A stretch of 64,000 bases of DNA from Salpingoeca rosetta (GCA_033442325.1 JAWQFM010000012.1:62001-126000), one strand, 5' to 3'. Positions 6,815 through 10,056 are shown, counted from the stretch's first letter. Notes: generated by a model from the letters alone, not told the origin. A program made the numbers and translations.

Positions 6815-7368
6815 ATCACGCCCCGCACGTGCTCGCACACGCATACGCACACGCACACGCACGCGCGACAACCAAGCTTCTTCATTGCTGATGACCTTGG
6901 AGCTCACGCACAAATACACACACCCCCCTGTCTCTCCACGCGTGTTTTTGCGTTGTTTGCACTGTTTGTCCTGCGTTTCCTGTATGCCTGGGTGTTGTTG
7001 TTTTGCTATTCCCTCGATGCTCTCTCTTTGCAGTGCTGCTGGTTTGTTGCGTTTGTGGAAGACGAAAGTACAGAGTGATACGCTGGCAAGTTATCAGACG
7101 GTAAGATCAAGGAGGTGGGTGCAACAGACACACGTTGTTTGGGTAATGAGTATGACTTGGAAAGAGGTGGCAGAGTAGAGTGAAGTCAAACGACACAACT
7201 TGGACGAAAGCAATCAACAACTTTGAAAATGCCACCGCACTTATGGCGTGTGAGCAAACAGAGAGACGAGACTTTTGAAAAATGTTGCAGCGCAAATAGG
7301 TGTCGTTAGGGAAGACTCGCAAACAGTTGCGAGGAAGCGTGTTAAGAAAGGATGCATGTTGCTCATGC

Positions 7369-9066
7369 TCAAGGACAGTTGCCCTCAATGAGCTTGGCGA
7401 GGTCACCTTCGCGAAAGTGACCATTCTTGGATTTGTTGCGGATGTAGTTGATCTCTGAGAGGACTTGCGTCTCATAGGCTTCGAGTTGGCGAAGAAGCTC
7501 AGTGTCAACAGCAGGAGCTGCCACGTCTTCGAGCAGAGCGAAGCGGCAGAGGATACCACAACCCTTGTTCGTCAGATGGTGAATCACTTCTTTCAGGTGG
7601 GACCCATTGCCTGCATATTCGCCTACGAATGAAAGGAACAATTTCAGGGGAAGAAGTACCAACATGAGGGAGGGGGGAGGTCAGTGTCAGGTTCTGTTGC
7701 TAGCTTCGTCAGCATGCCAACAACATCGCGGCTTACATGTACAGGGTGCAGCGAAATTGTTCAACATACCTTGGAGCCGAGTGCGAATGTGCTTGGTGCA
7801 CCCAAAGTAAAAACCCTTGATGACGCCGTTTGGGAACAGCACTAACAGCTCGTAGAAGCCGGGTGCGTCGGGCAAGTCAGCCCGGCAGAACTGGTGGGAG
7901 GTCCGCAGTCCTTTTGCAGGCAACAGAAGTGACATGGCAGAGAAGCGGAGCTCTTTACCATCCATCTTCAGGGCTGCGTCATGCTCCAAGTCCTCACGAT
8001 ACAATGAGGGCCCCTCTGTCGTGATCGTGGAGGGTGGTGTGAGTTGCTGGAAGAGACGCACCAGCAGGGGGTAGACGACGAAAATGCAGCACAATCGCGT
8101 GGGTACATCTCATCCACACACGCACACACGCACACACACGCACACATACACACGCACACACACAGACACATACACACAGACACACACACACAGACACACA
8201 CACACAGACACACACACACAGACACACACACACACACACACAGCGGGTGTTGGGTCCTCACGTCGGTGGGTGTTGTTCTTGCGAGGGACCGCATTGGTGA
8301 TCGCACGCACAGCAAGCGTGGTACCGTCCGGAAGCCGAACATCACGGGGATTGCTACCATTGCCCGCGTATGAGCAAGTGGAGTGGAGGAGATTAGCCCA
8401 CCGCCTCACGTCCTTGTTCGTACCCATCGTCGTGGCGCGGAACACGAGCTCATACCCGTGCTCTTTCCATCCTTGCTGAGCGAACTTTTTCAGCAACCGT
8501 GACGGCACTAGTTCGTGTGTTGGTGTCAGGAATAACGAGAACAGGCAAGTGCAAGGCATGAGTTACGGATGAGACACCGGCTGAAACATGACATGACAAC
8601 TACTGCTATCAAGTTCATCAGCAGGCTGTCTGTTACCTGCGTAGACAGCAAACGAGCAAGAAAAGCCAGCGTAGACGGCAATCACTTGCGACCCTTTCTT
8701 GTATCCAATCTCAAAGCAGCAACAGGGGTGGCACTTGCGATAACGCTTGGTGGGAGGCTTCCATGATGAGAAAATCGGGAAGGACGTGTCCTTGAGGAGT
8801 CGCCGAAGTTCCTCGTCGTCGAGGTCCTCGCGACGCGGCTTCTGGGTTGTCTTGGATCTTGCTGGTTGCTGCTGTTGTTATTGGCGTGGTGCTGCACCTG
8901 CCGCGCTCGCCCCGCTGTCGTCATCCAGGGCCGCAGCAAGACGCTTCCCCTTGTGGTCAGGGGCGAAAGCTTTGGGCCTCACCTTAACCTTGACCTTGGA
9001 TCTTGCTGGTTGCTGTTGCTGTTGGCGTGGTTCAGCGTCAGCCGCGCTGGCTGAGCTCGTGGTCAT
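7369..9066 (-). CDS. GIY-YIG nuclease-fold protein with two EFFECTOR OF TRANSCRIPTION-like domains; exons 9066-8637, 8507-8242, 8046-7770, 7622-7369; in-frame TAA at 8878-8880 (possible pseudogene or extra intron)
   Basis: C-terminal domain [12 protein letters not shown]...[25 protein letters not shown]...GCGILCRFA...[27 protein letters not shown]; three phase-compatible GT-AG introns; exon total 1227 nt. Confidence 0.7.
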
Positions 9067-9109
9067 CTTCGAGGAATCGTAACTGGCATCTGCAATGCAC
9101 ACAATCTGT

Positions 9110-9129
9110 TCGACTGAATTCAGTCACAC
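9110..9129. promoter_or_regulatory. Palindromic motif TCGACTGAATTCAGTCACAC in the GIY-YIG/MRPL40 bidirectional promoter
   Basis: Perfect 14-bp palindrome GACTGAATTCAGTC (9112-9125); 19/20 match recurs at 31107-31126. Confidence 0.5.
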
Positions 9130-9184
9130 CCATTATCACACGAGACCACCAACCTAACTCGCAACACGACCACACAACACAACC

Positions 9185-9329
9185 ATGCGGCGTGCGCTCA
9201 CGTTGATGAAGAAGGCGGCGGAGAATGAGGGAGGCGTGTTGGACATGCTGAAGATCATTGCACGCCCGCCCGTCGCCAGAAAACGCCCAGAGCTCACACG
9301 AGAGGTGCGTGGTGTTTCTGTGTTTCTGT

Positions 9330-9366
<37 letters not shown>

Positions 9367-10056
9367 TGTGACTGTGTGAAAGTGCAAAAGTGTGTGTGTG
9401 TGTGTGTGTGTCTGTGTGTGTCTGTGTGTGTCTGTGTGTGTGAAAGCGTGAAAGTGTGAAAGTGCGAAAGTGTGTATGTCTACACTGTGGCGTGTATTGT
9501 TTGTACGTGTATCAATTGCATGTTCTTTGGGTTTGCGTGTGGTTTTGCACGCACTGTGTACCGTTCTTCTTGTTCCACCCGTCTCCCTTCTTCCTCCTTC
9601 TTCCTCCCTCTCCCTCCTCTGCCCTCTCAACAACTCGTTGGTTGCGACTCCGCCATATCGCGGACTCTCAATCAACCTTCTTACCCCGCTCCCCCGTCCC
9701 CGCTTCTCCATGCCCACCACATCCACTACACATCCAACAACCCTCCACCCCTTTCCCCCCCCCCCACACACACACACACACACACTTGCGCGTTGCAGGA
9801 GCTGGACAGGAGGGCAAAGCTGGTGAAGGAGTGGTCGAAGCACTGCCAGCGGCATGAGAACCGGGTGATGAAGCGGATGTCACAAGCTGTGAAGGCGAGA
9901 GATAGGGCGCTGTTTGCGCTTGCTGATATTGATGAGGAGCTGCTGTACAAGGCGTGCATGCCGGATTCCTCCCGCTGGCCGCTGAAGGCCTCCAAGCCCC
10001 TCGCAACCCCTCCCATCCCAGGCTACAACCCCCAGGCATCGGCCAAGCAAGAATGA
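9185..10056 (+). CDS. MRPL40: Mitochondrial ribosomal protein mL40; exons 9185-9304, 9799-10056
   Basis: RPELTREELDRRAKLVKEWS...ALFALADIDEELLYKA...WPL...TPPIPGYNP matches the mL40 C-terminal signature. Confidence 0.78.

Follow-up and report, generated by a model that had tools for sequence, protein, structure and literature searches.

A two-domain GIY-YIG nuclease gene of the choanoflagellate Salpingoeca rosetta, most likely recently broken by an in-frame stop or reduced to a short isoform

Plant EFFECTOR OF TRANSCRIPTION proteins (ET1/ET2, HRT) carry a GIY-YIG domain of the Pfam family PF19239, and we know of no description of these proteins with a tandem dead copy of the domain. According to PMC6585611, citing Ivanov 2008, the domain of ET2 has DNA-nicking activity and is able to stand in for the GIY-YIG domain of UvrC; what defines the ET proteins are their C-terminal Cys-rich repeats, which bind zinc and DNA (PMC6585611). 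The domain is not restricted to plant-type proteins: besides a cluster of 622-aa streptophyte proteins, presumably the plant ETs, PF19239 has members in bacteria and archaea. These are stand-alone proteins of about 114 aa from soil organisms (Acidobacteriota, including the protein P0005; Bryobacteraceae; Nitrososphaerales). We collected 53 relatives and aligned 48 of these bacterial and archaeal sequences into a profile, A1, seeded with a 114-aa protein from one of the 401 Acidobacteriota genomes sampled; the family of ~114-aa proteins is rare, occurring in that one genome and in none of 14 control genomes. Within A1, a Ser-His pair and a Glu at family position 51 show little or no variation, and the column of the UvrC catalytic Glu holds Gln in 34 of the 48 members (P0005 and relatives; L124:1501-1845). 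When compared with the PDB, A1 matched T4 endonuclease II (2wsh) and the N-terminal GIY-YIG domain of UvrC (1yd6) alone; these matches are weak (E about 0.2; 0.24 for UvrC), and the alignment lines up the YVG, Arg, Tyr, Glu and Asn columns.

The window analyzed here is a 64,000-nucleotide stretch of the genome of Salpingoeca rosetta (GCA_033442325.1, JAWQFM010000012.1:62001-126000), with positions counted from its first letter. An earlier note on this DNA had proposed that the minus strand between 9066 and 7369 encodes, in an uninterrupted spliced frame of about 408 codons, a tandem GIY-YIG protein with two related blocks, which we call block 1 and block 2. The coordinates, the strand, and all of the peptide strings quoted in support are indeed present in the sequence, in one frame, but that frame is broken. 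From the ATG at 9066, it runs for 62 sense codons to a TAA at 8880-8878, an internal stop that had been missed, and then for another 328 sense codons (390 in total) to the terminal stop at 7371-7369. Exact-sequence look-up of the product of the last 221 codons identifies the gene as PTSG_07257. In the public annotation these 221 codons, starting at the ATG at 8427, are the whole product, listed as a "hypothetical protein"; UniRef names it a GIY-YIG domain-containing protein and a PF19239 match is precomputed in the public record, so the domain itself had already been described here.

PTSG_07257 is a transcribed, spliced gene of four exons on the minus strand. Our RNA evidence over 7100-9400 comes from two raw stranded RNA-seq runs and from Logan contigs of two additional runs, produced in other studies; transcripts of the gene are found in several RNA data sets. 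Throughout, the first mates map to the plus strand, as expected for RNA from the minus strand, and the orientation of the reads switches from about 9102 upward, where a divergent neighbor begins. The contigs and raw reads place the exons at ~9101-8637, 8507-8262, 8015-7770, and 7622 to ~6834, the last including a 3' UTR that extends to ~6834. All three introns are of the GT..AG type. Intron 1 (8508-8636, 129 nt) is supported by the joint 8507/8637 in both contigs. Intron 2 (8016-8261, 246 nt), most of which is a CA/GT microsatellite, is supported by the adjacent contig pieces 7769-8015 and 8262-8507 and by an RNA depth of zero inside it. The joint of intron 3 (7623-7769, 147 nt) is seen in the raw reads of one run and in both contigs.

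The two blocks are distributed over these exons, all on the minus strand, as follows. After the TAA, the remainder of exon 1 (8637-8877) opens a frame lacking Met and encodes the leader of block 1, REDL...FSSW, together with degenerate versions of the GIY and YIG strands, CCFEI and VYAG, placed there by RNA and profile alignment. Exon 2 (8262-8507) holds the C-terminal half of block 1 (GYELVFRA ... SYAGN), as well as the annotated start ATG at 8427, according to RNA, the ORF listing, and the profile. Exon 3 (7770-8015) encodes the leader of block 2, YREDLEHD...FSAM, and its GIY, YIG, and Arg motifs (GFYEL, FYFG, and RTRLQ), assigned from RNA and hhalign. The coding part of exon 4 (7369-7622) carries block 2 from YAGNGSHL to the Glu helix and the Asn motif, ending in the stop at 7371-7369, as supported by RNA, Pfam, and hhalign.

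Block 2 (7411-7998, minus strand, spanning intron 3) reads as an intact PF19239 GIY-YIG domain by Pfam, hhalign, a local HMM, and residue mapping. The 221-aa product scores 26.7 bits against Pfam PF19239 (E 5.3e-6, residues 123-212 on profile positions 66-162), above the curated gathering cut-off of 21.4 bits, so that PTSG_07257 is, by its profile score, a member of PF19239 through block 2. Single exons fall below threshold against the same profile (E 0.04-0.08). A bona fide bacterial member of the family likewise matches the Pfam profile only from position 66 on; positions 1-65 are left unmatched by the S. rosetta and bacterial proteins alike. With A1, hhalign gives a probability of 94.4% for the 221-aa product (E 9.4e-8, residues 104-207), and a local HMM of A1 scores block 2 at 27.4 bits (E 1.3e-10).

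The residues of block 2 that correspond to functional positions are Y110, Y125, R135, Y140, S145, H146, E188, and N200, in the numbering of the 221-aa product. R135, Y140, E188, and N200 fall on the Arg, Tyr, Glu, and Asn of UvrC, among which the Arg is catalytic and the Glu and Asn belong to the metal site, when the alignments are chained from block 2 through A1 to UvrC 1yd6, the last step of which is weak; the Glu helix is mapped according to hhalign, and the hmmalign table mis-places it. The earlier note had held that block 2 keeps the catalytic set, and the hhalign and chained UvrC alignments agree with it: the catalytic Tyr, Tyr, Arg, Glu, and Asn appear to be present in canonical order. 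All of the residues invariant in the family, which in the numbering of the first A1 sequence are Y28, Y44/G46, R54, Y58, S63-H64, L100, Y105, and N108, are kept in block 2 as Y110, Y125/G127, R135, Y140, S145-H146, L192, Y197, and N200; the nearly invariant Glu 51 is replaced by Ile. As far as can be judged from its sequence, block 2 carries every residue expected of an active single-strand nuclease.

Block 2 is the same domain as that of the stand-alone bacterial and archaeal proteins, with which it shares the motif order CYEL / VYVG / R / Y-x-x-NGSHL / G-x-x-L-x-x-R / Y-x-W-N at an identity of 23-33%. Each of those proteins consists of one domain encoded without introns and lacks the REDL leader; the S. 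rosetta frame, in contrast, contains the domain twice, along with a basic tail. The comparison with the ET proteins ends at the domain family. A pattern search of the whole read-through frame found no ET-type Cys/His repeats, bearing out the note's remark that plant-type zinc repeats are absent, and the protein ends 13 residues past the block 2 domain; because the defining Cys-rich repeats are missing, PTSG_07257 is not an ET protein. Unlike UvrC, it has no UvrB-binding, EndoV, or HhH module and no repair-operon context.

The assignment of the fold as GIY-YIG rests on the profiles and on an ESM Atlas model, and should be read as a prediction. The Atlas model matched GIY-YIG and PF19239 clusters, bacterial GIY-YIG clusters among them, at TM 0.38-0.51. 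Its best structural neighbor is the 622-aa streptophyte cluster, which is 100% PF19239 (TM 0.51, residues 61-221, in a low-confidence model); the alignment, with the same low confidence, begins at residue 61, which corresponds to the leader. Two AlphaFold models made from the single sequence were poor (pLDDT 38 and 39), with an order of secondary structure that fits beta-beta-alpha-(alpha)-beta-alpha; Foldseek found no meaningful match in the PDB for the second of these poor models.

Searches for relatives returned little beyond the gene itself. With HMMER, the last exon matched only the PTSG_07257 product and three spurious tandem-repeat proteins among 1.84 billion representatives, and a word-indexed protein search with the 221-aa product found that product alone. 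No relatives were detected in other eukaryotes, holozoans included, among proteins inside the length range of the search, nor did the 221-aa product find any in bacterial genomes, viral contigs, or metagenomes. PTSG_07257 may descend from a bacterial transfer or may be an old eukaryotic gene. There was no match in phages by tblastn, nor any in the PHROGs, NCBIfam, and PADLOC libraries, and a sequence search of the PDB with the 221-aa product gave only noise. Six-frame searches of the S. rosetta genome with the PF19239 or A1 profile gave no match either; these are uninformative because the exons split the domain, and the known locus itself also went unscored. The note's expectation that the architecture is not common across holozoans fits these protein searches, in which no other holozoan relative appeared. 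Within S. rosetta, the locus is single copy in the 55.4-Mb assembly: peptide searches with exons 3 and 4 returned the locus alone, and no paralogs were found at the sensitivity of those searches.

Block 1 (8359-8832, minus strand, spanning intron 1) is more diverged, and its relationship to PF19239 was assessed by profile alignment, shuffles, and a Pfam search with exon 2. Because intron 1 splits the domain, we scored it locally as the spliced piece. The A1 HMM gives 9.7 bits (E 3.9e-5), aligning HMM positions 26-106 with block 1 residues 53-128 in colinear order; none of 2000 shuffles reaches this score and none exceeds 7.2 bits. When all six frames of the mRNA are compared with the A1 HMM, the coding frame alone scores. 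Exon 2 searched against 24,736 Pfam models yields only two matches, one of which is PF19239 (E 0.08), at profile positions 116-153 as expected. The resemblance of block 1 exceeds chance at the profile level only: the direct comparison of the two blocks is marginal, with a phmmer E of 0.006, a Smith-Waterman shuffle p of ~0.02, and 10 of 70 profile-guided columns identical. The REDL...FS leader precedes both cores, although support for this repeat is weak (BLAST E 1e-4, shuffle p 0.018).

One could argue from these data that block 1 is not homologous at all, and that PTSG_07257 has one GIY-YIG domain preceded by an unrelated, possibly non-coding region with a chance likeness. Such an argument can point to the marginal pairwise similarity, to the lack of a Pfam match for exon 1 alone, and to the Atlas feature searches, in which the two halves of block 1 gave no GIY-YIG match. 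(These feature searches did give a Tyr-DNA phosphodiesterase at 0.84; we dropped this candidate for low recognition.) We consider it very improbable: the A1 alignment is in the right order and scores above every shuffle, exon 2 matches PF19239 at the expected place, block 1 lies in an open frame in phase with block 2, and the leader recurs at an equal relative position in both blocks. The profile tests thus uphold the note's claim that both blocks belong to the GIY-YIG family.

At the catalytic positions block 1 has F, Y, a gap or S, Y, R-L at the Ser-His site, W at the Glu site, and N. It retains Y44/G46, the Tyr of the SH helix (Y58), and the C-terminal Y-x-x-N motif (Y105 and N108), but not the complete set of residues invariant in PF19239. 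The loss of Arg and Glu, which the earlier note had recognized, is confirmed by the column alignment, and it goes further, as the first Tyr (now Phe) and the Ser-His pair (now Arg-Leu) are gone too. Block 1 is best described as a degenerate relative of PF19239, and because all of these residues are lost, it is predicted to be a strongly diverged and catalytically dead duplicate.

The hexapeptide YAGNGS occurs in both blocks, at 8359-8376 and 7603-7620 on the minus strand, at positions that are not equivalent. In block 1, it forms the C-terminal Y-x-x-N motif; in block 2, it belongs to the Y-x-x-NGSHL that follows the Arg helix. It drives the best pairwise BLAST match between the blocks and could mislead an alignment.

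What separates block 1 from a start codon is the TAA at 8878-8880. The upstream ORF (8881-9066, minus strand), consisting of the ATG at 9066 and 61 more codons rich in Ala, Gln, and Lys, shares its frame with both blocks, as seen in the ORF listing and stranded reads. The ATG at 9066 is the only in-frame ATG upstream, and the TAA, which lies in a CAA/CAG (poly-Gln) run, breaks the long frame between this ATG and block 1, as the ORF listing, the RNA reads, and two contigs agree. The stop is retained in the mRNA. No alternative letters were found at the TAA in the RNA reads of two runs or in the two contigs covering it; no joint that would remove it is reported, and both contigs run through exon 1 without a break (8637-9305). 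The public assembly GCA_000188695.1 matches the 1901 bases surrounding the TAA (7300-9200) exactly; all sequence and RNA data come from one cultured S. rosetta isolate. A tandem protein encoded as an intact ORF, as the note proposed, is not what the mRNA contains, and since the in-frame TAA stays in the mRNA, the two-domain protein is probably not made as such.

The frame beyond the stop nevertheless looks like recent coding sequence. The first 107 codons after the TAA, which hold nearly all of block 1, contain no Met. A frame of this length stays open in 284 of 20,000 shuffles (p = 0.014), and its GC3 of 0.67 is close to that of the CDS (0.64) and unlike that of introns and UTR (0.47-0.55); because the frame is open and its GC3 is coding-like, we suggest that the region was translated until recently. 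Past the TAA, the 328 codons are free of other lesions, and splicing of all three introns is exact; both features are as compatible with a gene that still works as with one broken very recently.

The 5' region also contains a duplication. Local DNA alignment reveals two imperfect direct copies of ~75 nt on the minus strand (9067-8995 and 8925-8851, within 8851-9067), each running from GATGAC to a Gln run and PARSK. The TAA lies in the second copy, whose own ATG, at 8924, has been thrown out of frame by a 1-nt deletion. From this ATG, an 80-codon out-of-frame ORF (8682-8924, minus strand) extends into the beginning of block 1; it probably just reflects the duplication and frameshift of the start.

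If the stop were bypassed, the full tandem protein could still be made, either by readthrough of the TAA (391 aa) or by minor splicing of a 111-nt GT..AG candidate intron (8872-8982, minus strand; recognized in the sequence and not seen spliced), whose removal deletes the TAA and gives a 354-codon ORF, for a product of 354 aa. Such a protein would combine a dead and a live GIY-YIG domain in a pseudo-dimeric nuclease, as the earlier note had put forward. A TAA between CAA codons is reported to be a leaky context in yeast and plant viruses, and the TAA of PTSG_07257 sits between CAA codons. On either side of this single stop, the frame is open and resembles coding sequence, and the candidate intron begins with GTGAGG, ends with ...AACAG like the real acceptors of the gene, and has a length that is a multiple of three. 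Against this, no joint for 8982-8872 is reported in the RNA, given a listing threshold of ~10% of reads and a depth of ~5-17x; raw-read depth over 8871-9024 is at least as high as in the flanks; the TAA shows neither editing nor a variant base; and the frameshifted ATG of the second repeat copy resembles decay rather than design. We regard continued production of the tandem protein as quite unlikely. A fuller version, in which the TAA is bypassed by readthrough at CAA-TAA-CAA or by regulated removal of 8982-8872, and the dead-plus-live nuclease is of possibly bacterial origin, later internally duplicated and provided with introns, has in our estimation a slim chance. Were bypass to occur, the product would stand as the sole PF19239-type protein yet found among holozoans, lacking any detectable ortholog elsewhere.

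A different possibility is that the annotated 221-aa protein, from the ATG at 8427 to the stop at 7369, is a real and functional stand-alone nickase, and that everything upstream is a fossil serving as a regulatory 5' leader laden with uORFs. Of the ORFs that begin with an ATG, the 221-aa frame is the longest, and it runs unbroken across two introns; the transcript encoding it is present in several RNA data sets, and the stand-alone 114-aa PF19239 domains of bacteria and archaea indicate that one domain can suffice. The position of the start argues otherwise. The ATG at 8427 is the first in-frame ATG after the TAA and the seventh AUG of the transcript; the six ahead of it include the starts of the 62-codon and 80-codon ORFs, and a transcript starting at exon 2 would still leave two out-of-frame AUGs upstream of it. 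Moreover, this ATG lies inside the last helix of block 1 and not at a domain boundary, and the 107 codons upstream would not have stayed open with coding-like GC3 had they long been untranslated. We therefore find this account unlikely.

PTSG_07257 is most likely a two-domain nuclease gene that has recently been broken or is now reduced to a short isoform. Specifically, we favor, with a probability of roughly 0.55, a recent break of the gene, with the internal AUG used inefficiently at most. The ancestral product would have been a protein of ~390 aa that combined a basic tail with a dead and a live domain. DNA would be nicked by the live domain through the one-metal mechanism usual for GIY-YIG enzymes, and the dead domain would at most aid DNA binding. 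A nonsense change in the CAA/CAG run would then have disabled ordinary translation of the ~390-aa protein in the only isolate sequenced. The best remaining product would be the annotated 221-aa single-domain protein, badly placed for translation behind the six upstream AUGs.

On present evidence, PTSG_07257 is not a new repair, epigenetic, or defense module. The locus offers a clear-cut case of very recent gene death, or else of stop bypass, in a choanoflagellate used as a model organism, and the public model is a truncated longest-ORF call that hides a decayed second domain and a premature stop. A domain type that plant biologists have treated as part of plant-specific regulators belongs to a wider family, PF19239, that also comprises a single choanoflagellate gene and many small proteins of bacteria and archaea.

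The surroundings of PTSG_07257 are those of an ordinary nuclear gene. In the public assembly its neighbors are housekeeping genes (Rft-1, RPL5, RPL37, Chibby, MRP-L28, an ammonium transporter, and a WD40 protein), with MRP-L28 as its divergent partner. That the gene has spliceosomal introns, is single copy, and has housekeeping neighbors shows it to be an ordinary nuclear gene; bacterial contamination or a mobile element is ruled out by the three spliceosomal introns, the single copy, and the location between MRP-L28 and the ammonium transporter. The gap between the 5' ends of PTSG_07257 (~9101, minus strand) and MRP-L28 (~9102, plus strand) is very short, and a perfect 14-nt palindrome, GACTGAATTCAGTC, lies at 9112-9125. 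MRP-L28, a mitochondrial ribosomal protein gene (PF09812 according to the public annotation), occupies the plus strand from 9185 onward, and in the two raw RNA runs it is covered ~2-7x more deeply by reads than PTSG_07257. Both genes contain long CA/GT microsatellites, at 8109-8252 in intron 2 of PTSG_07257 and at 9313-9450 in the first intron of MRP-L28.
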